Assembly: GCF_000150275.1 (NCBI RefSeq)
Contig: NW_002060944.1
Span: 2,828,152 to 2,892,151, forward strand
DNA: 64,000 nt
Reading direction: 5' to 3'
From: Trichoplax adhaerens
Lineage: Eukaryota > Animalia > Placozoa
Part shown: positions 14,178-36,614 of the stretch, one piece after another
Position numbering within the stretch: position 1 is the first letter of the stretch
Layout of the letters: each line of letters begins with the position of its first letter
Program-made: the position numbers and the translations under genes
The notes under the pieces: generated by a model
What the model was told of the DNA's origin: nothing
Databases searched by the model: none
What the model saw: only the letters and a program-made list of their open reading frames with translations

Positions 14178-14500
14178 CTTGATAAGTCAGACCTTTTCGA
14201 ATTTGCAGTGCAGACAATAGTACAGGTTATTTTAAAGCTAGTATGAAGTTATAAGCATAAAGTTGACGTTCGATTGAGCAGATCACCACGTGGTAAAGGA
14301 TCTTTACCGTATCCAAAATTTTTATAACCTTTGGTTGATGGAATTGGTGATGTAAAATTGTCAAGAGAGATTGTTTACAAAGTAAATCTAACATCTCTTT
14401 ATATATGGCAATGAATGGATGAAAGAGCTTGGACAAATAAATTCAGTTTCATCCAATGATAGTATGACATTAAAGACTACATCTTCAAATAAAGTTTGCA
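14178..14500 (-). other. Candidate alternative first (5' UTR) exon of the RGS gene
   Basis: Strong donor CAAG|gtaagac (exon end 14178). Contains the uORF 14436-14227. The 5' boundary is approximate. Confidence 0.35.
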
Positions 14501-16186
14501 ATAATACGATGATAAATATCCACCAGTATCAAAGCAAGCTGACCAACAAACTAATGACGTTAAAAAGAAAAGATATTGAAAATTACCCATTTTCGTAGTC
14601 TTAAGATTATGTAGTGTCATTAACGCTTTGCCATAAAAGAATGTAAATTTTAAGAGTATCTATGCTCTGTAGGTATAGTGAATCTGTAACGCTACATATT
14701 CGTAAATTTTAATCAGTATATTGAATACATTTGAAATATACGTGAGTTGGCTATCCATATTTGAATTGGCTACCATATTGCACTATAGTTAATAACAGCA
14801 ACTTTCGTATTGCCTTAAAAGGAGATATTTAATTTGTACGTATGCAAGCCATCTACACTCGAATTTATTGGTATTCTACACCGTACTAAAAAAGAATAGC
14901 TTTTCTCATAGCCTTAAATTAGTCAGGATATCACTAAACAGTAACGATAACATCATAATGATGTGATTAGTAATAATAGCATCTTGAATTCTATAAATTA
15001 AAATTGTTTTATCACAAATACAAAACTATTCAAATCAAGAATAAATATCGTAATCAATACGGATACTTACTGTTAATATTCGTATAAGCATAACTTAATA
15101 AGAAGCTCATTAAAACCATTGATTTACGAAGTATCACTGAAGCTCAAAGAATACTTACAGTATAAAAAGTATTTGCAATTATTGTAGCATATTAATATGG
15201 CAAGTACAATGATAGTATATCTTTCAGCAATCTAAAATTGAGACCAAATAGCGTACGATACGATATTATTATCATTAAGTAATTTTCCTTGACATTTAAG
15301 TCTTACTTTAGCTTATAAATTGCTTTTGACCTGTTAAAATTCAGTATTATCTTGAAATTAGCCTTAATAATATTCTGTATCGAATCAGATTTTGAAAAAT
15401 AATAAATTACGTAAACAAAACAATTCACAGTTTTGTTTATTTACAACTGCATGCATTCGTACTGCATATTTATACAATTACATTTTATGCATTTGAACAG
15501 TTCTAGTAAGCAAGTCTGTAAATATGGTGTTTACAACATTGTTTGTGATTAGATACCATATCTGTATTTTCAGAAAAACAATTAGGTTAAATCTTAAAAT
15601 GAATACAGTAAAAAGCATGAAAAGTTAGGAAATAAAATAAAAAGCCTTATTAGTCTGTATAAAGTTGACAATTACAGTAATTGCCGAATATCACGAATAA
15701 GCTTATTGCCAAAAGGAACTATTATTTAAGGTAGGACTCTACCAGATCAGTCAGTAGTTAATTTATTGACGATGCAACATTGGAAATAAATGTAGATAGG
15801 GGTATTCTGACAGCGAAAAAGGTTTATTTTTTTAAGAAGAGTTAGTAGACAGTGATAGTTACTATATATTAGTGTGATGTAATTTCTCTTAAGGTAAAGA
15901 TAAACTTGACTGATAGCAACTGTCGCGATTGTACGTCAATTTTGAAAACGCTTATTCAAGTGACAGTTCGAATCTAGGATCTAAATGTCGATGATTTTCT
16001 TATTTTAACCCCATAAACATTAGATTTAAATCCAGGTTTGATACAAAAACACGATTTTTGAATATCATGATATTGATATAATTTTGCCTTTGTCTGAGTA
16101 GCTTTTGGTCATATTAGCAGTCTTTCTAATTAATTATGCATACAGGTATATCACTTACTTAAAGCGTAAAAAGATGATAGGTCAAA

Positions 16187-16225
16187 CCATGGACTACTAG
16201 ATGTACCATATCCCGTAATCCATGG
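16187..16225. mobile_element. Ultra-short palindromic insertion (CCATGGACTACTAGA family), copy 1
   Basis: ccatggactactaga...gtaatccatgg, flanked by near-identical 5-mers tcaaa/ttaaa. Confidence 0.6.
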
Positions 16226-19200
16226 TTAAATATGTACTCTCTCTAATATTGAGTCTCTTTCTGGTAGTACAGACTAATAATAATCTGCTATTTATTGGTA
16301 ATGATTATAATTAGCCCTTTCTAGTCTAAAGACAGATAGATATTCATGCCTAGAATCGGTAGCCAATCGATACCCTAAAAGGTGAGTACGATTACGAATA
16401 AAACATAACATACTGAAGAATTACATGCAGTAAACAAGTACATGAAGTTTTAGAAGCAAGGAGTTCAACTAGTTCAGATTGAATTGAAAGCAACACTTGA
16501 GCAGTCAGCAATAGACTTTAAATGGTTACCGTACTGAATACACTATCTTCGTTAGTTTCTTCAATATTCATTCATAATCATTTTTGATGCATCATGAAAA
16601 CATCGATAAAGTATCGAAATACAGTCACTTGCATAGCAACTACTACTATAAATACTTACTGGTATACAGAAACAAATTCGTCTTGTGTGATTTCTTGAGT
16701 GAAGATCATTATTATGTAAAATAAACTTCATTATTTTTTCTTTTGCAGTTATTGGATCAGAGTCTAATCAGAGACGGTGGTCTGTACAATTGCAGAAAAG
16801 TGCCATACTATATTAAGCTATATTGCAAATCCTTAAGAAATTATTTAAAGGCACTATAAATGAAATCATCTATTGATCTAGAGCAATAATAATTAATCTT
16901 GAACAGAAATTCTCTAAAATGTGAGCATGACAACTGTCGCAGGGAGTCTCATCTGGTAATATTAATTTATTCGCGTAGTAAATGCACAGCAGTAATGCAA
17001 TCTCTAATGAAGTTTTAATGGAGCACAAAACATTTGAAAAGTTTATTCATTTTCCTGGATAAATGTAATATTAGCCGAAAGATTAATAGATTACAAACAC
17101 AGTTGCTCTGTTACTTATAAATTTACATATCAATATCTGCCAAAAGTACGTTATAGGATCAAATTTATCAATGTCGAGTTTTTCGAAACCGTTAACAAAG
17201 TCAGCAACTTAAATTTAACAGAAATCATGAATTAATCATTTTGGAATTAAAATTAATAGATATTAATGCAGTTAGCAGCCCGACATTCTATTACTTGTTA
17301 TTCTCATCCAAAAAATGACAATAAAAGAAAATATAAGATAAAAGTCGATATACGAGTATCTACTTTTTTCTATGTAATGATTTGTAAGGCGTAAAAAATT
17401 GGACTTTAAGTGTTTCTTTCAAATGAGTTTATAACTGAACATTATAATTTTGTAGATTACGTCGTTGTTAAAAGTACTAGAACCTCCAATACAATCTTCC
17501 AGTTATCTCGGTCACCATAAAAATTTATTTTTGAAGAGGCCTGATCGTAACACTCCAAACCAGCATTGCAACAAATTAAAGTTTGTATATACAATACAAC
17601 TAGCATAATCTGATGCTGTATGCATTATAAACATCTACAATTCTTAATAGAAGAACTAACACTATCAGCTGAAATATAGAATTATTACGAAAGACTGATC
17701 ATTATCTTCAAATGGAATGATAAATTGTTTACTAAAGAACTAAGCAGCTGGACTACTCTATCTTATTGTACGATTATAGTACATCTATGTCACAAGAATA
17801 TTTGTGAGACTCAAAACATAACCTTGTCAACTATAATTTAGGACCTGAAACGAATGTAAATATCATTTATCAAACAAGTTTATTATTTCAATTTAATTGG
17901 GAAATAACGTATAATTTTCTATAATTTATTCATTAATTTTTTATATTGTCAAATTTTCAATATACTGGAAATTTTATGAACTCTTACGTATTTAGAGCAA
18001 CTTTGCATATAAAGCTTAATATGGCTAAGTAGGCTACAGAAATAGCCTAGGTCTATATCAATCTAAAAGTATTCATTGCTTCAGATACCAAGCAAAACAT
18101 TCAATGAAACAGCGACATAAGTTTTACTAGATCTTGTGTTATGGGAAATAAATTGTGTCAACAAGCAGCTAAGAATATAGCATCTTCCAATACTTCGATT
18201 TAAAGCATTTTATACCTGCGTACAGATATTAATAGTTTTCTTTTATAGTCTGAATGTCTAATCTGCTCCTAAGACTATCAATACTTAAACTATAAATGAT
18301 TAATAAATAGTTAATTACTGTACGTATAATAATCATCGTTTAATGACCTATTTTGCTTGCACTTTTGAACTGCAGCACATGTTAGAGATTATTTCCTAAT
18401 AGTCCTGGAGTGAATGAGCATGAAATATTATGGCTATTTCAGATACTGACGCACTCTTAGTAGTATAATCAGTCCGCTAAATGAAATACAATCAGTAGAT
18501 AGAAACCTACTATGTATAGGCCAGAAAAGGTAATAAAAGAGAAGTGAGTACTGCAGATAAACAACTTTCACGGTTATTCATACTTTCATAGTGTAGGCTA
18601 CTTCAGGTTTTGTTAAGTGTTATCGCACGATCTAATATATCATGCCTTCATAAGCTTAAAATTATATCTAATGAACGCCTCAGTGAAATTTATATTTTTT
18701 TATATAACCTATGATATTATGATAGAGGGACAAATCATAAGCCTATCCTTAGATTTTGTTTAGAATATTGAGAAACAATTATTCTATCGTAGATTTAGTT
18801 ACTGGTGTTGAGTCATTAAAAGTGAGAGCTAAAATTTTAAACCATGCTTTGTTTTAAGTGTTATTCATGGTAAATGTTTAAAAATATTTACTTGTCCATG
18901 TCTATTATTTATTAATATCAAATTTTGGCAATTATACACCTGTAAAAGCTTAAACAAATTTTAATTTTAATCGAAGCATAACCTTAGCATTATCAATAAA
19001 GATAAGTCATAATTGTGTTGATACTTATTATTTGTTACACAACCATTACCTGATCGTACTGATATTATTTTTTTGCTGAATACTATAAATATATATATAA
19101 AAATTTAAATTAGANAGCTACTTTATCAATCTTACATATTTCTGTCATACACCTATGCTGCGAATCGTAATATATTATTTATACATAGCACTTATCATAT

Positions 19201-21541
19201 AGAATTAGCTCGATGAAATGGTTAAAAATTAACTACTTTAATCATCTACTGAAACGCCTATTAGCGCTCGAAACTTTTATAGCTGATGCTGTAAGACATA
19301 ATCACCCTTAATAAAGAAGAAACGTTCTACAAATTAGGTTATGTTTCGTCGTATTATTCGTAATGTAGAATTTTCATGACTGCCAAAAAAGCAGATAAAT
19401 ATTTACCTCCGAACTTAATTTTACGAATTCTAAATACGCATGAGATCTTATTTTATTGTAACTTTGACAATTCTAATTTCTGTATATTTTTCTAGAAATC
19501 GAAGCATCCTGCTTTGATCATGACCAGAATACTTAAAATATTGTTCTGAAAATTATTTTACTTCTATTTTATCGAATCGAGCGGAATTCGTATGAAGAAA
19601 ATTATTCTTTTATGCTACGAACTAAAATAATGGTATGTTTGATAAAACGAAATCGGCAACATTATATTAGCATAATAAGTTCTACGAGTAAAATTTTACT
19701 TATGTAAATAATGCAAAATAGGATTGCCTGTTTAATAAATATTATAGTCATTTACTGCTGTTACTAGCATGTTACCGTTTTCAAGAATTTTATTTTTCTT
19801 AATAAGACCTTGTTTATTTACAGCTTTTCAATTTATTTGCTACTTCGCAGCCGTGTCTCATTAGAAAATAATTGGACATGTAATTCGATAGTTTTGCTTT
19901 AGCACATTAACGATGATGCTTTTGTTGCTATTGAAAAGACGTCAGGTACTGCATGTATACTACATTGTTATCTAATGAACGATATTTTATGTAAGCGGCT
20001 GCGATCAATATAAACTTGAAAGTATAATCCGTAATAAGCAATAATATTTTAACTCTCTACATACAGTACGATGATATTTAAATAATATCGCTTTTAACTT
20101 TATATTCAAATTTATATACGTACCTAAATCATGTGAATTTAGCTTCCGGTATGAATGCAAAGAGAAGATTCGGTAGTCACAAGTAATAACTTCATGTCGT
20201 AGTGGCTGATGGAAATATTAAAGTGGCAATGCAAATAATAGTGCTACATCTTGCTGGTATTATATCTCACATGAATTTTATTCTGCTATTTTAGTAGGTG
20301 TATCGGACGTAGTTCAATGCCAACTACTGATATCTAAGAATGTATAGCATCACTATTATTCTAAGATGCTGAATAATACGAAATGTATCATATTTAAGCG
20401 CGTGCGATATCTTATATCAATTTTCATTTCAAAGCAGGAAAGCTTTACTCCAGTTTGCTTTGGTGGCGTTACTAGCTACATGGGTTACTGCTTTAGACCT
20501 ATTTCTACGGAAGAATCAGTTATCGATAACTTCTTAATTCATGACTAAAATTATTACGATATAATTTCTAAAGGTATTGGGCGGAAAAAAATATAAACAA
20601 TCACCAACATTAATGTGCAGGAAGAATAAAATTAACTTTATCATTGAATTTTATTATGTAATGCGATATCACTACTGCTAATTCAATATTATTTTCATAT
20701 CAATTATTAAACTTGTATTTTATTCATTACGAATTCATGAACGTAAATTAAAAACCTATATCTTTGTTAATTATATTCTAAATAATGAAGGTTACTGATC
20801 CGTTTCCTTAGTTAAATTACATCTGTTCGCTAGTTATAGAGGATAAGTAGGGAGCTGAAAATTATAACAATTTTAATTTAAAACATTCAATTGTCTTAAA
20901 ACCTTTGACATCTATAAATAATGAATAAAGTTGTTACTCATATTATTAAAAAATTCACATACTATACTTCATCAATCATTAGCCAGCTAAATTATGTAAA
21001 AATGCCCGGTAATGAGCCAGAGGAGTCAATTTAACAGCAATATTATCGTACTTAATACAATCCTTTAGCCACATCTTCAATTTCAATTATTCTCTTCCCG
21101 GTACGATGAAACTAAATTAAAATATGTCTCTAAAAAACTCTGAAATTAGTTCTCAACTTAGTTTACAATATCACACCGTACTATCTGAAGAAAATTTAAA
21201 TATCATGTTCAATTTACATATAGTATAAACTACCCATTATTGTTGTGCAACGTTACTCTGTTTAAAACTCTAATTGTGATGGGCATATTATACCGATCTT
21301 CTATCGATTTCTTTGCCATAGGTTTTCATTTCTAATGAAAAAATTCTGACCTGTTTTGTAATCGATATTTATTTCTCGTTTAAAATCTATCTTTATAGAA
21401 AGATTCACAGAATCTCTATAGCATCAACGATTTTTTATCTTTTCATCGTTTCCTATCTTTAAATTTTTAGTCTCTAATTTTCAGATCGGAAATATTTATT
21501 CTTGCAGGTATCGCCAAGATTAAATTATCAAATCTAAAAGT

Positions 21542-21889
21542 ATGAAAATCTTGAAAGAAATTGTCATTTTGGCTCTAATTGCTAATATCGGCTGCATGGG
21601 TGTTCCTCAAAATCGGTATGGCGAGATGTCTGATACAGATATATCAGACCCTCAAACGAATGAAAGTGTAATATTCACTAATGAAATTGTAAACGCGATA
21701 GAGGATTACTTGTCTCGATTGGAAAAGGAAGACACAGCCGTTTATAAAGTGCGCGATTCCGTTTCATTGCGTCATAATAGCTTTGCTGATAAACTAGCGA
21801 AATTGCAAGTGCTACTGGAGTTAAATAGGATTACACCAATATTCAAATTTGCCCATAACCAAAGTAGAAAAAAAATGCAAAAATCCTAA
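21542..21889 (+). CDS. Small secreted protein / putative peptide precursor (115 aa), single coding exon
   Basis: N-terminal signal-peptide-like segment (MKILKEIVILALIANIGCMG), acidic middle, amphipathic and basic C-terminus. An acceptor ttcttgcag at ~21507 implies an intron in the 5' UTR. No recognised domain. Confidence 0.7.
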   Translation: MKILKEIVILALIANIGCMGVPQNRYGEMSDTDISDPQTNESVIFTNEIVNAIEDYLSRLEKEDTAVYKVRDSVSLRHNSFADKLAKLQVLLELNRITPIFKFAHNQSRKKMQKS

Positions 21890-24800: not shown

Positions 24801-27800
24801 ATTTTAAGGTTATCAAAATTTAGTTTACGTTTAAATCAGTCAATGACTTACTATAATTTCGATAAACTTCGATGACATCAAAGATACTATCAAGGAACGT
24901 AACTTAAAAGGCACGAATTCTTGTAAAAGGATATTTCAATCCAAATTATCAATAGAACTATCATTTATAGACGAATAAGTGCCGTTTATTAAAGTTACTG
25001 ACCACGATGGCGGTTGAGATATTGTCAAGACACTCGAAACGTTGAGGTCCGCCGAAAACTATTGCTTTTACTGTAATTATTATATATAAGGCCGTTCAAT
25101 TTAAAACAGTTGCTGAAAAGTAGAAATTTACAATTAAAAATTAATATAAAACGATAGATTAACTATATGAAGATCTAATGAAATTAAAATCAACATGTAT
25201 CGTCAAAGTTCGCCGAAATTATCATCACTTCATTAACCCGTAAACATATCCAATTATGTTGCCACTACTGTGCATAGTGTCAATTTTACGATTCTATGAA
25301 ATTTTTTATATCAATAGAATTTAATAAAACTCAGTATAAATACACAATATAGCCTTTCATGTTTTTCACTTCAAACTGATGGTCATAATTTATTGACATC
25401 TTTATAACTTACAACCATGTGCTTGGTACAAATCAGCATAAATTTTATTTGATAATTGGTATGCTTTTGTCTATACTGAACAATTAATAGCCATGAAACC
25501 AATCATTTGATAAAATTCGAGTGGTTTCAAAATTGCTTATCAAAATAGATGATTATTTCGTTTATTAAGCTAGCGCCATCGCTAACTTTGAAGTAATATC
25601 TTATCACAACTAATAAACTATTTGTTTGTCTTAAACGCAAATATATATCAATATAGAACACGGACTATAAAAAATCTTAATGTACGGTAGATAACTACTA
25701 GGCATAAAATTTGGAAATCTTTTAATCTCTCAAGGGGGCTAGTGTTCCATTCTCATAGATAGTCTGATGGCCCCTTAATATTATCTATCGACAGTTTAAT
25801 ATGTGTTGCTATATCATATGCTAAGAAAATGTAAGTTTGCAGAAAATGAAGCGATTTAAGACATGAATGGGACTTTGGATCAAATCTATCGTACCTAATG
25901 TTATATCGAATTATAATAAAATTAGTAGCTATTATCTGCGACTATTAATAATAAATATGGCCTCGTTATACGATTGATCATGGATAAATCATGAGCAAGT
26001 ATTATGTTACTTCATATTAACGTCGCATAATTACGTATTCAAAGAAGATTTCATTATCAATATTAATCTATCTTCTCTAAAAACAATTTATCCTTATATA
26101 GCCGGATTTCATAAAGTGCATGAACCGTAACGAAATAAATCAAGCTGTTTCAGGGCTTTATGATCGTATCCTAGACTGAATTAATTCATTGACGATAATA
26201 TTTATTGTACAGAAGATTGCTAAATACAGCATATTTTATTTAATTGGATTCTAAGTGTATCAATAAAGTGGCATTATGGCACTATTTGACTGTGCATAGA
26301 AATCTAGCGTTGATAATTATGCACTATACGTTGAATAACACCTTTAGTATTATTCTCTTAAAATATCGAATATTTCTGATTGACAATAAAACGGGCATTT
26401 TTAATATGTATTAATTACGTTTTCTTGACCTTACTAATCATGTGTCTATATAAATGCCTAATTTCCTAAAAGTGGGCTACAATTATAATCTAGAATTAAA
26501 GTTTAACAAAGCTGTTCCTTTATTTCATGATCTTATTTAGCGTTTAAGATAATTCAGCTTTTTCATCATGCTGGCACTAAACTATGAATGATTAAGGCAC
26601 TAATTCATATGTCTAATTAGATTGAACTTACATTATCAAATTCACTTTACTCCCAAGTATGCACTAAGAATTACATCTTCAAGCTGATATTGATTAAATA
26701 TCTTATCATTATTTACAGATGATGATTATAAATATCAGTTTTATTTGTGTAAACAATATTTTATAAATGTGTGCGCTCAGCATATATAGAAATTGATCTT
26801 ATAAAGAGATTAAACGTAATAAATGCTTTAATTTAATTTAACTATTACTAACATGTATTTTTAAAACAATTGTAGTCAACTATGAATGTGAATATAATAC
26901 CACCTATTCATTAATGCTAATTTCCTGTAACATTGAACATAGAAGAACTTTATTGAGCTTATTTTATTGAACCTAAATTTAGGATATTATTACCAAGTTT
27001 AAAATGCGATATTAGCCACCCTATCTCATCAGATATAGCTATGTTTTTTTCTTTGAAGTAATATTATAGGCTGGTATGCCATATACAGATTTAAATTAAG
27101 CCAGCTGAATCAACAGTGAATACAATAATAATACCCTTTTACAGTGTTATTTCATTACTTTATCGAATTTAGTCTTTATCGAAAGTCTGTGGGTAAAAAG
27201 GAAAGAAATAAACGAAGTGGGAATAACAACGATAGCGACGGTCCTTGACTATAATTTGTCTTCCATCCTTTATTGCAATAGTTTAAAGTGTAATAGACAC
27301 GTCGTTATTTACCTATGTAAGTTCTCGTAAATTAAAAAGTTAGCAAATTTCATACAACCAATATTTATATAGCCACTACAGTATCTAAAAATGGTGAAGT
27401 CCTTTATTAGCGATTTCAAATAGTAATATCAACAATTTCTAAAGATCGATATTTATTTAAACTGAAACAAATGGAGTTGCATTAGAAATTCAATAAGAAT
27501 ATTTTAGCATTGATATAACCTTTATTAAAATATAGAAATCAGATAAAAATAGCCTATATCCGCCTTTTCTTAATGATGCGCATACTTAATTTATATGCAT
27601 AAACAATAAACGAAATAATAATAATAATCTTCAATGGTTAAGGTATTGAATATTTTATTACTGTTCGTCTATTAATTCCGCTACACCTTGAATAATGTAA
27701 ATAAACTATTTATGTAATTTTAATGCTAGCCAGTATAAATTTTCGGAATCTCGATAAATTTAGATTCATATCGTGATAGCGATTTGTTAACAAGAGCGGT

Positions 27801-28390
27801 GAAGTGGTAAGGATAAATCTCCAATATAATTATATTACTGTTTGTTCTAGGTTATAGAAAGTTGTAAGTTAGAAACCTAAATTTATAAAAATTGATCTAC
27901 GTACCTAATAGCATAATCTAGAGTTTCATTCTGTGCATATTATTCAATCAATATATAAAAATTACCCTGTCGTATTAACCTTTATCTATTCGTTGAAAGA
28001 GGTATAACTATCGAGTTTCAGATTATTTCATTTTTGTTATTGTAATTGACTTGTCTAGCCAAAATATTGTGCAGCTAAATGCATTAATTTGCATATTCAT
28101 TTATTATAGATTTTATTGGGTACCAAGCTAGCGTAATTTGTTCACATTGCTTTTACTGAATAATTACGTTTTGATACTATTAGACACTTAGATAAGATTT
28201 TTTCTCTATTGCGATAAATATACGTATAATACTACGGTATTATTGGCTTGATCCAATTCCTCTTGTCACGAACTTTTTGATCTCTGTCGCTAAGATTAAA
28301 TCGATCTGAACATATTAAGTGAAGGAAAATAATTAATCTTTTCTATTCCATCATACCATCATAGAATCACGAACATTAATTGAATTTGCC

Positions 28391-30477
28391 ATGGCTTTTG
28401 GACACTACTTTCTGATTGTTTTATTATGCTTTATCGTCGTGCAAAGTTCTCCAGTTAAAAAGTAAGCAAATATATGCGCTAATATTACGTAATCATCATT
28501 CATCTTAATATTTAGAGTCTTCTGCTATAAGATTTTGGGCATTAAAGTATATTAAAATCGTTATAGCGATTTTATATTAAAAGTATAACATAGATGTTTT
28601 CAAGTAATGATGTATACCGTAGCACAGTATTATTTTGATCATGTTTTAACTGAGAATAAATCTATCATGATGCTCGATCTATCAAGTCTTAAAGTAATAT
28701 TACAGATAAATAAATGTTAAAGTCACAACAATTTTGCTTTAATGAATTTTCTGGGGTGCCTGAAAATATTAGAGAAGATAACATGCTCTTGGATAGGTTA
28801 GTGTTCTCATTCAGAAAATTACATTACGATGATGCATTCGATATAGCAGAATTCCGTTAAAAAATAAACTATGTATTTTCTTAACTTAAATCTTTGCTGT
28901 CCGACGCTCATAATTACAGCTCAGTAAATTTTTATGGCACGTTGAATAATTTAATGTTGATTTAAACTAAATAGTTATAATACATTTTGAGAGTGCGGTT
29001 TCTAATATTGACTTTTACTCTTATCTTTTACGTCAGATACATGGACAATTCAGCAAAGAGGTAAGACACATGCTTATCTTTAAGTTTGCTTTTGCTTCAA
29101 TCTATACACCATATATACATTAGGTAAAAGTTAGTCTAAAGCAAAAAGGTCATTTATGTCGATGATTCTTCATTTAAAGTATTGCTATCTTACTGCTATT
29201 CCTTTACCATAAACCAGCTTATAATTTAGTATTAGTCCTAGTCTATGACTAACTCTATTTCGAATAACATTACTATAAGGGCAAAATAGTACCTTAACAC
29301 CAATATCCATATAGGGATTAGTACCAAGTTTTAGCTTTCAAATATAATAATATACGAGTACAAGAACTTCAGAGCTAAAACTAAATACTTCTCATAATTC
29401 TAATATTCTATGTATTAATTACTAATATTTAATTTAAAAATATTCATATTTTCTAGCGAAGAATTTCGGTAAGCATAGCGCTATTATATCACAATGTAAT
29501 CATAATCACATTGCAATACAAGTTACGCTGACTGCAAACTAATTCTATCCCCCGAAAAGCTATGCTAGACGCAGTGGATTTCCTTGGAAGAGGTAAGAGT
29601 ATGAATTTAAAACTTGTAGGTGATAATATCTATTTCTTAGAAGAGGCTAATATCTAAAAGCATACCTAGTAACGTTCGCGGTTTATGCGAATATGTAGTT
29701 GATTAGTGCGAATAAATACAGTATCTATTGCTCTGAAGTCATAAATTAGCTCCGTATCTCTAAAGGGTATGGCTTTATTTTCTTGCTTAAAGTATGCATT
29801 GCCATATTTACCCTGATAAAGAATGATTAAAATGATTTTCTTGAGTATCTTTTTAGATAATTACTAAATACTCGATAATAATTTCTAAATATCGATAATT
29901 TTAGGGACCAAAATCCAACAGAGGGGTGAGAATAAGACTAAATCAGCATGAGATAATCATGGCTATAGAACTAATAAAAGCTACTATTTATCATTAAATA
30001 TTCCCACTACAAGATAATTGCAATTAACATAAAATATTTGTTATACCTTATTTAAAAAATACCGTAAAAATTTAGGCCGCCATTTCTTTGGAAAAGGTGA
30101 ATGATATATGTAGAAGATATTATCGACGATTTCTATTATTTTATGAACCTAGAGTTACTGATTACACCATTTACAGTGTGTTTCACTACCCTTCCGATAT
30201 AAAATATACCGATATACTTACTGTTCCTTGATTAAAAAAATTGTCCAATATTTAACACCAGCTTACTATTTTACTGCACTTCATTTATTTTCATAATAGG
30301 TCAGAAGACCGTGCTCTAGATTATAAAGAAGCAAAAATCATGGAAAACTTGAAACAGAAGTATAACAAGGCTGAACTTGATGCGTTCATCGAAGGTTTAA
30401 CGATGCGAAAAACTTTAAAAACTTATCTAAAAGCTAACATGTTCAAAGCCTTTAAGAAAGCATCTTTACAGCATTAA
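28391..30477 (+). CDS. Micro-exon-encoded secreted neuropeptide-like prohormone (~124-127 aa)
   Basis: Kozak gccATGg. Exons 28391-28461, 28773-28796, 29037-29060, 29457-29468, 29560 (or 29569)-29592, 29905-29925, 30076-30096 and 30300-30477; all introns are GT-AG and phase 2. Protein: MAFGHYFLIVLLCFIVVQSSPVKKEDNMLLDRYMDNSAKSEEFR(YAR)RSGFPWKRDQNPTEGPPFLWKRSEDRALDYKEAKIMENLKQKYNKAELDAFIEGLTMRKTLKTYLKANMFKAFKKASLQH*. Confidence 0.8.
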
Positions 30478-32559
30478 TATCCGTGAAAGCTGAAGTTCTA
30501 CAGAGAATTGGCAGGTTAGGATAAATATATAAATGATCAATGTTCACTTCTAATATTATAAACTACTAACCTCCAGAATGGTATACGTATATAACTTCTT
30601 AAAACGGTGCCATAATGATTACGTTTATGTTCACTAGGTGCAGTATGTTCTAATATACGATCTGGAAAGCAGAAAGACTTAAATTTGAGACCAGTGATAT
30701 TCTAGGATTAAGATATCAAATTTACTGCAATTGCAGCAATAGTGAAACTCTAGCAATAATAATTCACGTAATAAATATGCATATATTCGTGCACAATTCT
30801 CTAGTCTATAGTGTCAATTAAGTACCAATATTATAATACAGCAATATTTGAGTTTACGTGTATACCTGAAGTAAAGAATTTGCAGCACTAATGTTTAAAA
30901 AATTACGATAGTTATTGCTATAATCGTAATTGTGGTCTATTTCAATCTGAATAAATCTGCATAGAACCATTGAAAGAATGATATGCCAGGAATAGAGCTG
31001 TAAATGTTGTAACAGTAGGAAAATAAAATAAAGCTTATAGATCCGAAACTTCATATCCTTTCGCATCCTTCATAAATATTCTACCATGCTTGCTCAATTC
31101 TCAGACAATATATTTGAATGTGTACCTTACCTGAATGCAACTACGAGTGATGTGTTGTAATAATACATAAAACTGCCTCAGTTTAATAGTTACTTAACGA
31201 AAGATGTCTCCAATTCTATAGACTATTTCATGATAGCCATGATGTTGAGATCTATTCTTGCTCTTTAGTTTTCGAATTTAGAAACACGAAAATTACGTTT
31301 TACTGTATGCAATGAAATAATTAGCTTACTCTTTGCAAATTAATTTTACCTAGCCGCTTCAGATTGATCACGAAGCACTATAAAGCTAATCCGATAGCAG
31401 ATGCTCAAGAATGCGTTATCGTGTCTTATACCCTATTACTTTGTATAAACCTTTACTGCTAACTCAAAACATATAGCGATATCTGCTTCACTAAATAAAA
31501 GTTATTTCTTTTTACTATTAATGATTTTTTAGAATTTAATATATTTCTATTTTATAAAAACCCTCAAATAAACAATCATGAATGGATATTATTATATTCC
31601 GTCCTCCATTTTACTTACTAATATGATACAAGTACGAAAGAATTGCAATCTTTCTACTTTGAACTACCCCATGTGTTTGAATATATCACAAATTTAAGCA
31701 CGTGTCGTAGTTACTAGCATGAAGATTACTCATCAAATGCTACTGTACATTTCATATTTTAATATGAAATGTATCAGCGAAATTCTAAAAGTTACGAAAC
31801 CAAGCACAGAGGGTATACCAACGTGGAAGAAATTATCGATATGCGTGTTTATTTGATAAAACTTATCTACGGATTATAATCGACTATCCATATACGTAGT
31901 TCAATGTTTATCGAGTGATCATACTTACCGAATAAACCATTATCGGGAAACTGTTCAAAATTTAAGTGTATTTCGGACCAGTAACAAGGAAGTTACTCTA
32001 TTACAATTACATTGCGACCAAAGTAGACTATTTCGACAAACAAAATAACCGTTGAATTGTTCATGCTTTTTGATATCGAAAATGCCACTACTTTTCTATT
32101 ATTTGGCCAATATAATAAATAAATATATACAATAGCAAAAAATTTCGCAATAAGTAATTTTCGTGTACGTTCTTAGAAACATTCCACAGTAGTAGCCTTT
32201 ATTTAGAGTTCATGCTGGATTACAATTTTTATATCTTCAACAAATGATGCTGATATATACCACAAGCAATAAGTAATGAAATATTAAGAGTACTATAATC
32301 CTAGCGCTATTGATATTCATTACATAGAAGCTTCTTTTAAATAATGATCGTTGCATAGTCAATATCATAACAATAAGTAAGTATCATTATTACCTATTTC
32401 GAAATTAGTCCAGGCATACACATTAATATAATCTAGTTAGTAGCGATAATAATGGAAATCTACGCCTTGCCTGCATGCGTAAAAGCGACTCTCATATTAT
32501 TACATCGGATCTTCATCAATATACCAGAGTAATGGTTACAAGTGATGTTATTTTCAAAT

Positions 32560-32870: not shown

Positions 32871-32968
32871 AAAGATCACAGTTAATTCATTCGGACCAGA
32901 TCAAGATTAGGTTCCCGTTATAGTAATCTCCATAAGAAAATACGGATAGTTTATCAAAATAATATCAT

Positions 32969-35900
32969 TTAGATAAGTATTGGTTCCACTTTTAATTGGA
33001 TTAATGGGTTGGGCAGAATGAACATACCACATCGACGTGGTTCAATGCACTGATTTGCGGAAGGTAAACTAAATTTGAAATTAAATAATAACTTAGCCAA
33101 AGTAATCTTCATTTCGGTCATAGCAAATCTTTTGCCCATACAGGTACGTGAACCGATAGAAAAAGATAAAACCCCATGATCTCGAACGTCTTCACGTTTA
33201 AATCGTTCCGGATTAAACTCATTACCATTTGGAAATGCATCATCGCACCTATAGTTTAGTTATTAATGCACAAAAATAATAAAAAATTACCAATTTAGCA
33301 ATTAAGTTCAAGATTTGTAGAAAATATTGCGTATTGCAATAAGTACGTGGTACTAGTACCTCTGGCAAACAGCTAAGGCAATATATATAAGGGTTCCAGC
33401 AGGAATTTTATAATTTTGTATGACATCATCTTTCTTAGCGACACGTCGCAGAACGTCAACTGGAGGATACAGTCTTATGTATATAGATAGGAAGTTTTAA
33501 CTGCAAGTATTATTAATATGATAAGTGCTATAAGTACTATGAGAGCAAACCTAAGCGTTTCCATGATAATAAATTCAATATATTTCAGTTGGTCTAAATC
33601 AGAATTAGCTAGATCACGATCTTGTTGTAGTACATTCTGAATCTCTGTTCGTGCTTTATCCTGAATTTTAGGATGTTTCGCTAATAAATATAGCGTCCAT
33701 GACAATGCAGCTGTAGCAGTCTAAATTAAAGAAAAGTGCATGTAGATCTAAGCATTTGATATTAGATGAATCAACCAATTTATTAAACATAAATGTCGAT
33801 TGATTACCTCACGTCCTGCCATCATAAATGTTAAAATATTGTCACGTAGCTGCTTATCCGTAAATGCCGGTTTACCAGTCTCATCTTTAATGTCCATTAG
33901 AATATCCAACAGATCGACATCTGAAATTAATTACATAATCATTAGACAATACGGTGCAAAATGGATTATCTCGACACTTGCGTATAAAAAATAACCGAAC
34001 CGGATGTTGATCTCTGTCTTGAATTTCTCTTTAATGCTATCGTAGAATCGATCGCTTTACGCACAACACTTAATCCTGCTTCAATTTCACGGTTGCATGC
34101 CAGAGGAAGATACTGAAAATATGGTATAAACTGTACCAAGCTAAAATAGAAATATATTGGTAGGCTTTTAAGTCTTTTTTACGAATAATGTTAACAAAGC
34201 AATTGCAGGCTCATTTATCTTAATTAATGATGAATATAAGGCTCATTCATACCCGAATAACTGTCCGGTAACAGCACGATTGAAAACTGCGCTAATATTC
34301 TTAGCATCTATATTACACCCAGATAAAGCCTCAAACTCATATCCAAAGGTACAACGACCCATAATATCAAGAGTCTAAAATTAAAACCGCTCAATAAGAC
34401 TAAAGATCTTCTGATTCCAATTAACTGGGTTGGCACTATCGATAAGTGCTATGTATACTACTGTAGAAATACTAGTAGCTTCAATATGTTCATTTAGTAC
34501 TTTTGCCATGCTATCGTTATGAATTGAATTAGTTTCCTTGAAGATTTATTTTAGTACAACAATTTCAAGGAATTATGAATATTATACAACATACCAATTG
34601 TTTAAAATATTTTTGGACACAGATAATACCATCATTGCTCTGTGAAAGATTATGTCGCCATAGTTGACATAAGGAAGTTACATACATATTGAACACAGTA
34701 GTCATGACTATAAATGAAAAGGAAATGAAGTCAATTTATAATACGTCTATAGCAAATTAATGGACAATTTATCAATATTGTATCAACTTAGTAAAAGTAA
34801 AATAACAATACCAGTGATGCTATCTGCATTGAAAGCAGCCGGTGCAATCATTCCTCTATATTTTGCATGATCCCTTCCAGTAGAAGCCATCACACCATCT
34901 CCAATAAGGCGTTGATTGACCCTAGTAAAGACACAAATGCACAAATAATCCTATATATTAGACGATATAAGTATGGGCCCTCTATCTAACAGCATTTAAG
35001 GGCTAATTTTTTTATTCTTTTTTTTATGCTTTCAGAATTTAAGATTTAGTAATTATCGAAGTTAATAGAAACATAAAGATATGTTTTCTTGGTATATACT
35101 GTATTGATTTTTCACTTACTGAAAGGCTTTCTGTTTTTCATAGTTCTTGTGATTAACGATTAAAACATGATTTATAGCCTTGGGGCAACTGATCATGACA
35201 ATATCTTCGTTGAATACGTTATGAAAGTGTACAAATTTGCCGTATTTCTCAGTCCATCTAAAAAGTCATATTAAATCGATCATTTCTGAATAATGTAGAG
35301 TAGGGGTACTATTTTAATGTCGTATTAGTTTATTTAAAATCCTATTTGTTACTAAAAGCAAGCATTGTAAAAACAATCATTACAGAATCCTGTATCGCTA
35401 TAGCTACTCTTACTTGATTTCGATTTCCATTGGCCTTGATGAGTATAAATCATAAAGATTGCCAATGACGGGACGAAAAGCTGGCCCAGGCATCTAGATA
35501 ATTACGATAATATGCATACCTAATAATGCTTACGATAATTTTTACTCTTTTGCACGGCAGAATTATGGGCTAAGAAGTAACGTCACAACTGCTATAAAAG
35601 TTGTTCATTTATTACATCAATTTCGATGATGCAATGTCAGTTTGCTTTGTTAGCATCCTCAAGTAATAATAACAAGCATCTAAGTATACAATTATAAATT
35701 TGTGAATAAGAGAAAAATTAAAATAAACAGAAGTATCGGATTCACTATTGATAGCGCAAAACCATTGGACGTTTGATAAACTTCTTAATTGCAATACTGT
35801 ATTCACTTTTAGGATTGCTCGCATCTACGCGTAACTTACATCCTACAGAAGAAAGGGCATCATCTCTGATCAATTGCTATAGCAATCCACTAGTATACAG

Positions 35901-36482
35901 TATGATAGCGCTTCGCTAGACCATGGACTATCCATCTACAGTACGGGTCTGGAAAACGATTGACGATGACGTTGTAGCCCACTTTGTTATCCACTACTCG
36001 TTGAAAATTGTATATTCCTTATGGTATAATGGCATTTTTTCTGTGTGATATGATGACAAGTTAGGCTTACTTTTACAGTCCATAAGTAGTAATACGATAT
36101 TGATGTCGATTAGGATACCTGTATGATCATGGTTTATGATATGATGATACTATACTGGTGTAGTAACCTGTTGCAGGAATAACGCTACGTTAGCAACAAC
36201 ATGGACGCCATCGTCATCCTATCAGCTAGAGTAGTTTTTGTATCACACTCTCTCTCTCATGGACTGATTTACTATTCGTTATGGAGGATTGATCATGCCA
36301 TAGTTTGATCGATTGGGTACAAATCAGTAGATTGATAATATCGATCCTACCTGTTTTAATGGCGAAAAGTACGGCTTAATGAAACATTTATATGCAACAT
36401 AGACCGCATAAGTTGCCAATGATACCTTGAATCCAACCTTGATGACATACGTAAACGACGATGAGTTGTCATTTAGCGTCAT
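32969..36482 (-). CDS. Cytochrome P450 (paralogue A), 11 exons
   Basis: Exons approx. 36482-36351, 35493-35414, 35257-35119, 34921-34812, 34707-34595, 34374-34253, 34141-34000, 33920-33808, 33720-33551, 33473-33360, 33248-32969. Contains the N-terminal membrane anchor, PGP motif, I-helix MMAGRETATA, ExxR (METLR), FNPERF and heme motif FSIGSRTCMG. Confidence 0.95.
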
Positions 36483-36614
36483 TTCGCAGAAACGATCATA
36501 ACAAGATGTGTAATAGAACAACTTAATTTTATAGCTAGTGCGTTGCGATCGATGATGAAGTTGAAGGCACTAATCTTGTAATTTAGCTATTGCTTGGCGT
36601 ATTTGCCACTCAAC

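Follow-up and report, generated by a model that had tools for sequence, protein, structure and literature searches.

Placozoans coordinate behaviour by secreted peptides alone, and for this reason a complete catalogue of their peptide precursors would provide raw material for questions about the origins of nervous signalling. Catalogues built from gene models and signal-peptide filters miss precursors that are encoded by micro-exons. Here we describe an example of such a gene from Trichoplax adhaerens (the H1 strain below), which lies on the + strand of a 64,000-nucleotide stretch of contig NW_002060944.1 (positions 2,828,152 to 2,892,151 of the forward strand; NCBI RefSeq assembly GCF_000150275.1). 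This whole stretch is called the window, and coordinates are counted from its first base. An initial annotation, made by a model from the letters of the window, had read positions 28391-30477 as a neuropeptide-like prohormone assembled from six symmetric micro-exons. It is near certain that this micro-exon gene is real and was rightly read, and its product is probably a peptide precursor that one peptidergic cell type secretes and that convertases process.

The closest described systems are the classical placozoan precursors (WPPF, PWN, RWamide, FFNPamide and others; Nikitin 2015; Varoqueaux et al. 2018; Najle et al. 2023). Like the micro-exon gene, these combine a signal peptide with basic cleavage sites, contain an Asp-Gln start that gives rise to pyro-Glu, encode peptides rich in Pro and aromatic residues with an unamidated aromatic C-terminus, and are expressed in a single peptidergic cell type. 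They differ in that they carry many tandem copies within one exon, whereas the micro-exon gene carries two related peptides on separate micro-exons. Mass spectrometry of the WPPF precursor has identified [D].pyroGlu-QKKPYNGWPPF.[R], a peptide cut after Asp and before Gln, cyclised, and left with an unamidated aromatic end before Arg. In the Trichoplax genome this precursor consists of 14 YNGWPPF-RR units at a spacing of 45-48 nt within one uninterrupted open reading frame (ORF; C1410:2300856-2301491). The WPPF gene is expressed in lambda cells and the micro-exon gene in mu cells; peptidergic cells share a prohormone convertase, two carboxypeptidases, an amidating enzyme and glutaminyl cyclase.

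With respect to exon arrangement, the nearest counterparts are the micro-exon genes (MEGs) of flatworms (Schistosoma and others), in which a 5′ signal-peptide exon is followed by a run of very small symmetrical exons, any subset of which remains in frame, and whose products are small, secreted and domainless, with partly fast amino-acid change (PMC4350168; 10.1101/2023.06.21.545858). MEGs are said to be restricted to platyhelminths. A further comparison is offered by the Wamide superfamily (cnidarian GPPPGLWamide and pQQPGLWamide; MIP/allatostatin-B), whose members are likewise short, Pro-rich, Trp-ending peptides set between cleavage sites (PMC7270403; PMC3268022), and one peptide of the micro-exon gene shares with them a likely pyro-Glu start. 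Amidation, which belongs to the definition given in PMC7270403, is absent from the predicted peptides. Unlike Wamide precursors, the micro-exon gene has no amidation Gly and only two Trp-ending peptides, which form no long repeat, and no homology to the superfamily could be demonstrated. Finally, the vertebrate tachykinin gene TAC1 places its peptides on separate small in-frame exons, and skipping of these exons changes peptide content, the mechanism that the initial annotation proposes for the micro-exon gene; the TAC1 isoforms are experimentally established. The TAC1 exons are larger and not uniformly of phase 2, and they are unrelated in sequence to the micro-exon gene.

The gene model was rebuilt from the window sequence as eight coding exons. 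Coding exon 1 (28391-28461, 71 nt) starts with the ATG at 28391 and ends AA|gt in phase 2; the exon as a whole occupies 28365-28461 and includes the remainder of the 5′ untranslated region (5′UTR). Then follow micro-exon 2 (28773-28796, 24 nt; K-EDNMLLD-R), micro-exon 3 (29037-29060, 24 nt; R-YMDNSAK-), micro-exon 4 (29457-29468, 12 nt; S-EEF-R), micro-exon 5 (29569-29592, 24 nt; R-RSGFPWK-R), which uses a TAG acceptor and would be 33 nt long with the alternative acceptor at 29560, micro-exon 6 (29905-29925, 21 nt; R-DQNPTE-G) and micro-exon 7 (30076-30096, 21 nt; G-PPFLWK-R). The last coding exon (30300-30514) is coding up to 30477 (178 nt), with a TAA stop at 30475-30477 and 37 nt of 3′UTR after it. 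The introns between coding exons all have GT..AG borders and fall behind the second base of a codon (phase 2), and all six internal exon lengths are divisible by three, an arrangement with a chance probability of about 0.001 for six consecutive exons. The open frame comprises 124 codons with the 24-nt form of exon 5 and 127 codons with the 33-nt form. These results bear out the exon number, splice borders and uniform phase proposed in the initial annotation.

The spliced product carries RR-SGFPW-KR and KR-DQNPTEGPPFLW-KR, and the rebuilt frame confirms that at both KR sites an exon junction divides the Arg codon as AG|G. Since AG|G is at once the splice consensus and an Arg codon, the last Arg of a cleavage site (AG|G or AG|A) is completed by splicing. 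In total, four of the seven junction codons encode Arg, formed from an exon-terminal AG plus G or A, and the exon borders therefore match the peptide borders. The unusual feature of the gene is its structure, in which each peptide module occupies its own exon of 12-24 nt; elsewhere, cleavage codons completed by splicing, with one module per exon, are known from the micro-exon genes of parasites.

The two Trp modules, FPWKR and FLWKR, have F-x-W-K-R in common and are identical at 13 of 21 bases. When the genome (105.63 Mb in 1414 pieces) was searched for F-x-W-K-R followed by a GTRA donor, there were four matches, two of which lie in the micro-exon gene about 500 bases apart. The shared motif, the base identity and the position of two of the four matches fit exon duplication, and the modules look like duplicated exons. 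A wider gene family sharing the W-KR|GT exon end was rejected, given that a reversed control of the same pattern yielded eight matches. The terminal exon is present in a single copy in the genome; the sole weak match (E = 0.43) was an unrelated helical ORF.

To follow these exons in transcripts, assembled contigs of four public runs were aligned on positions 27000-32000; such contigs drop rare forms. In X15, a recorded RNA library, one 777-nt contig starts 16 nt upstream of the ATG, crosses all eight coding exons and reaches the 3′UTR. In X11, which derives from another study and carries a template-switch oligonucleotide and a poly(A) tail, the same joints were found except for an odd joint between exons 2 and 3. 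In both, the junctions are joined in the predicted order. The joints 28461>28773 and 28796>29037 border exon 2, the latter also defining the start of exon 3, and the joint 29592>29905 connects exons 5 and 6. The 12-nt and 21-nt exons appear in the contigs as letters between two joints: 11 of the 12 letters of exon 4 lie between the sides of the joint 29060>29568 (X15 and X11), the twelfth having been aligned to base 29568, and the letters of exon 7 lie between the sides of the joint 29926>30298. For exon 5, which had been given as 33 or 24 nt, the 24-nt form with the acceptor at 29569 is the one used in transcripts, and the 33-nt form (acceptor 29560) was not seen in the RNA contigs. Run X1, which is DNA-like, is colinear with the whole stretch and contains zero joints; hence the spliced form is absent from DNA.

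The odd X11 joint (28795-29037) contains a single C without a match and the CAG that ends the intron, making it 3 nt longer than in X15. Its ends are non-canonical (GG..GT) and it would add a residue without shifting the frame; either an assembly error or a minor variant could account for it.

The same contigs define the full extent of the transcription unit. A non-coding 5′ exon (27768-27806, +) is joined to the leader exon (27805/6 > 28364/5, GT..AG; X15 and X11), and in X11 the template-switch oligonucleotide sequence abuts 27768, the 5′ end of the cDNA. A TATA box (TATAAA, 27734-27739, +) was found in the sequence 29-34 nt upstream of this end. The 3′UTR contains an intron (30515-30637, +; 123 nt, GT..AG) that begins 37 nt after the stop codon and whose joint was present in X15 and X11, followed by a 3′UTR exon (30638-31048, +) with AATAAA signals at 31022 and 31027. 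Poly(A) is added at 31048, as seen from a loose end in X11 plus very deep 3′-end contigs. Both the TATA box and the AATAAA signals lie at canonical distances. Thus, the gene is a single-copy, TATA-driven unit of 10 exons that spans 27768-31048 on the + strand.

The predicted product of 124 amino acids comprises a hydrophobic leader, KK, RR, KR and KR sites, and a 58-residue Lys-rich tail. The leader contains a 12-residue hydrophobic core (residues 6-17), with an 11-residue hydropathy window peaking at 3.7 over residues 7-17, and its V-Q-S motif fits the -3/-1 rule; the leader exon is present in the mRNA. By these measures the leader is a putative cleavable signal peptide, as expected of a preprohormone. 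The second hallmark of a preprohormone, short peptides flanked by dibasic sites, was likewise found, and the KK, RR, KR and KR sites are unchanged in Trichoplax sp. H2. The combination proposed in the initial annotation, a signal-peptide-like leader plus dibasic-flanked peptides ending in Trp, is therefore seen in the spliced frame. In a comparison by protein language model, the neighbours of the H2 protein were mostly neuropeptide precursors (at 0.84), which, being below 0.9, is taken as a lead only.

According to the proposed mechanism, the precursor would be made in one class of peptide-secreting cells, the 'peptidergic mu' cells of Najle et al., and its signal peptide would be removed, probably after VQS. 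A prohormone convertase would then cut at the KK, RR and both KR sites and a carboxypeptidase would trim the basic residues, yielding SGFPW, DQNPTEGPPFLW and the 58-residue Lys-rich C-terminal peptide. The peptide DQNPTEGPPFLW would probably lose its Asp and cyclise to pyro-Glu-NPTEGPPFLW, like the WPPF peptide. The sites read FPW-KR and FLW-KR, and because no Gly precedes the basic residues the released peptides would not be amidated. Known non-amidated, aromatic and Pro-rich peptides of placozoans had been cited as a precedent, and the published mass spectrometry of WPPF shows processing by the same logic. A homology of DQNPTEGPPFLW to WPPF, suggested by the match D-Q-N-P..G-P-P-F, was rejected, since 794 of 5000 shuffles (16%) matched as well; in neither similarity nor tandem single-exon architecture does the micro-exon gene belong to the WPPF family.

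Database searches used the terminal exon and the H2 protein as queries, the micro-exons of 4-8 codons being too short for protein tools. An exhaustive HMMER search of 1.8 billion protein representatives with the terminal exon returned a single relative, the hypothetical protein RDD44408.1 (TrispH2_003117) of Trichoplax sp. H2; outside Trichoplax there was none. The H2 protein found only itself in a collection of 5.8 billion clusters, and neither the H2 protein nor the terminal exon nor the upstream neighbour matched a Pfam entry. TrispH2_003117 shares with the H1 gene the same seven splice junctions, the same micro-exon chain and the same peptide region, and across 7 kb the H2 locus matches the window at 98.6% identity; its leader exon and every splice site are preserved. 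The published H2 model differs from the real gene at its beginning: it starts at an ATG within intron 1 (window position 28714), so that 20 intronic codons replace the leader. The leader exon is itself identical in H1 and H2, and the RNA contigs, which carry H2 alleles, join it to exon 2. Since the leader exon is intact in H2 and is joined to exon 2 in RNA, the N-terminus of the H2 model is wrong. For H1, no gene model was present in the protein collections searched. It had been anticipated that gene predictors would miss or mis-annotate this gene, and the models in the collections searched bear this out for the two strains.

Expression of the orthologue is consistent with a role in peptide secretion. 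Table S5 of Najle et al. 2023 (PMC10580291) lists TrH2_TrispH2_003117 in orthogroup OG_3483, with members in H2 and Cladtertia H23, and reports a maximum fold change of 89 in peptidergic_mu. The expression in peptidergic cells that the initial annotation had suggested checking is thus documented in the literature for the H2 orthologue, in secretory cells that bear the processing enzymes. The same entry gives the gene no curated name and no peptide sequence, and flags it "nosignature_nSP_nTM". To count among the extra candidates of that study, a gene needed a fold change of 50 or more in the peptidergic metacells of two species, no transmembrane segment, no Pfam domain, and at least one homologue bearing a signal peptide. 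The 'nSP' flag arises because the false start of the H2 model replaces the signal peptide, and for the same reason a peptidergic gene with 89-fold enrichment stayed unnamed. Comparison with the published catalogue lowers the novelty of the gene, the H2 gene being already an unnamed candidate. No description of its leader, peptides or exon structure was found: searches of the literature text for the peptide strings, the gene identifier and protein fragments found them in no paper, and the same strings were absent from 10.1101/2025.04.18.649542 (main text) and PMC11452194 (main text and two supplements). The corrected structure names concrete peptides for search and synthesis.

Several points weigh against the prohormone reading. 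The signal-peptide call derives solely from hydropathy and the -3/-1 rule. There are two related peptide copies, compared with 14 in the WPPF precursor, and the splice consensus AG|G could by itself have produced the Arg residues at the junctions, without their being selected as cleavage sites. In the available part of the published H2 peptidome table (PMC10580291) no peptide from TrispH2_003117 is recorded, and the predicted peptide strings were not found in the accessible parts of its supplementary tables, so that the peptidomic match sought for the predicted peptides did not materialise there. Two circumstances temper this result: SGFPW is shorter than any peptide in the parts of the table examined, and mu cells are rare. 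One predicted peptide differs radically between these close strains: owing to C>G at 30080 together with C>A at 30081, PPFLW in H1 becomes PEFLW (Pro to Glu) in the H2 genome and in the RNA contigs. Finally, the last 66 codons contain 10 non-synonymous and no synonymous changes between H1 and H2, which indicates that this part is not under obvious purifying selection. Taken together with the evidence above, the prohormone reading is well supported but unproven.

The distribution of differences between the strains separates the two halves of the protein. The first 58 codons contain no difference in 174 nt, against 47 in 2394 intron bases (2%; P about 0.02-0.03), and the protein is identical in H1 and H2 through exon 6. 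In the last 66 codons the non-synonymous rate exceeds the intron rate (Fisher P = 0.002), and the tail has eight amino-acid changes in 58 residues with no synonymous change. These changes fall within a divergence hot spot at 30080-30502, where about 420 nt, from exon 7 across intron 7 and the last coding part to the first piece of the 3′UTR, contain 24 differences; the flanks are about 1.3% different and the next 535 nt, comprising the 3′UTR intron and exon, show no difference. Because intron 7 and the first part of the 3′UTR stand out by their divergence too, a haplotype that diverges locally explains the pattern as well as positive selection does.

A reading that is compatible with a prohormone holds that regulated or stochastic skipping of the micro-exons diversifies the peptides and their cleavage sites, as in flatworm MEGs. 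The architecture would permit it: with all six internal exons multiples of three and all introns of phase 2, each of the 64 subsets of internal exons keeps the frame, as had been claimed, and the same C-terminus, and the codons created at new junctions encode Lys, Asn, Arg, Ser or Gly and never a stop. Exons of 12-24 nt are hard for the splicing machinery to define, and flatworm genes of similar architecture do skip exons (PMC4350168). In computed spliced frames, both specific consequences that had been predicted are correct, namely that skipping 29905-29925 gives KR-PPFLW-KR and that skipping the 12-nt exon gives AKR. In contrast to the documented skipping of MEGs, no exon-skipped transcript was seen among the contigs of the four runs, in which rare forms are lost; only full-inclusion joints were present, apart from the one odd +3-nt junction reading in X11, and the single H2 gene model includes every micro-exon. 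Because contigs drop rare variants, the missing skipped forms are weak evidence. The computed effects of skipping on peptides and sites thus hold, while its occurrence found no counterpart in these contigs, and we regard skipping at a meaningful level as possible though unlikely. It is directly testable with existing RNA data.

An extension of this reading would be that placozoan peptidergic cells use a device like that of flatworm MEGs, a prohormone of symmetric phase-2 micro-exons in which convertase sites are made at the junctions and the choice of exons sets both the peptides and their cleavability. We consider this speculative and rather unlikely; if true, it would mean splicing-level diversification of signalling peptides in an animal without neurons. 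In comparison with MEGs, the gene shares the row of tiny symmetrical exons (six, of 12-24 nt) placed after a signal-peptide exon and before a 3′ exon, whereas its micro-exons make up 126 of 372 nt (34%) of the coding sequence, which is not the greater part. It belongs to no described MEG family, does not come from a platyhelminth and has no sequence relationship to any MEG.

Alternatively, the function could reside in the long C-terminal piece or in the secreted protein as a whole, for example as a helical, hormone-like peptide of about 58 residues or as a domain for granule sorting or packaging, with the Trp pieces as spacers that owe their basic borders to the splice consensus. No other part of the product is as large as the tail, which is rich in Lys, Ala and Leu and would be freed by a KR site; language-model neighbours of the H2 tail included peptides of the glucagon/secretin type and the pancreatic-hormone type (0.80-0.82, leads only), and the likely upstream neighbour in H2, an assignment made from gene numbering, was labelled 'somatoliberin-like' by Najle et al. 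and placed in mu-like cells. The divergence data point in the opposite direction, in that the tail, with its 8 of 58 residues changed between H1 and H2 and no synonymous change, is the fastest-changing part, and the N-terminal exons that bear the peptides are the invariant part. The tail moreover has no Pfam match, no relative outside Trichoplax and no similarity to the neighbouring gene. A function centred on the C-terminal piece therefore appears doubtful.

It is very improbable that the C-terminus yields a cationic peptide of the antimicrobial type in place of a signalling peptide. The last 20-25 residues do have a net charge of +5 to +7, but the helical hydrophobic moment of the segment is low (0.07-0.23), from which it follows that the tail contains no clear amphipathic helix, and an amphipathic antimicrobial helix was rejected on this basis. 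The site of expression, a peptidergic cell type as opposed to gland or lipophil cells, also argues against it. A chance open frame or a non-coding transcript, which would accommodate the lack of protein-level evidence and the taxonomic restriction of the gene, is barely conceivable given seven canonical phase-2 junctions in RNA, a 124-codon frame open across eight exons, six consecutive internal exons divisible by three (chance about 0.001), the identity of the first 58 codons in H2 and the orthogroup shared with Cladtertia H23 that Najle et al. reported (PMC10580291).

About 6.5 kb upstream of the prohormone candidate lies a single-exon ORF of 115 amino acids (21542-21889, +) with a hydrophobic leader, which is called as a gene in H2 and is 99.7% identical there. 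By gene numbering it is probably TrispH2_003116, the 'hypothetical_somatoliberin-like' gene that Najle et al. assigned to peptidergic mu-like cells; if this assignment is true, two peptidergic-cell genes lie 6.5 kb apart. Kinship between the micro-exon gene and this secreted ORF was rejected for want of sequence similarity. On the downstream side, two cytochrome P450 genes (PF00067) follow the micro-exon gene directly in H2 and, by colinearity with the H2 models, would occupy window positions of about 32900-36500 and beyond; on the H2 locus L004 they lie at 14252-17765 (-) and 19457-21758 (+).

Some contigs departed from the transcript structure described above. A 107-nt contig of X15 folds back on itself across the 5′ exons (27768-27805 and 28364-28404), and an X15 contig in intron 3 (29107) ends with 15 letters that are the reverse complement of positions 27776-27790 of the 5′UTR exon. 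Both are probably strand-switch artefacts of cDNA synthesis. In X1, two contigs of equal length cover 29588-29714 at depths of 38 and 25 and differ at four positions in intron 5, which suggests the presence of two alleles in that DNA sample.

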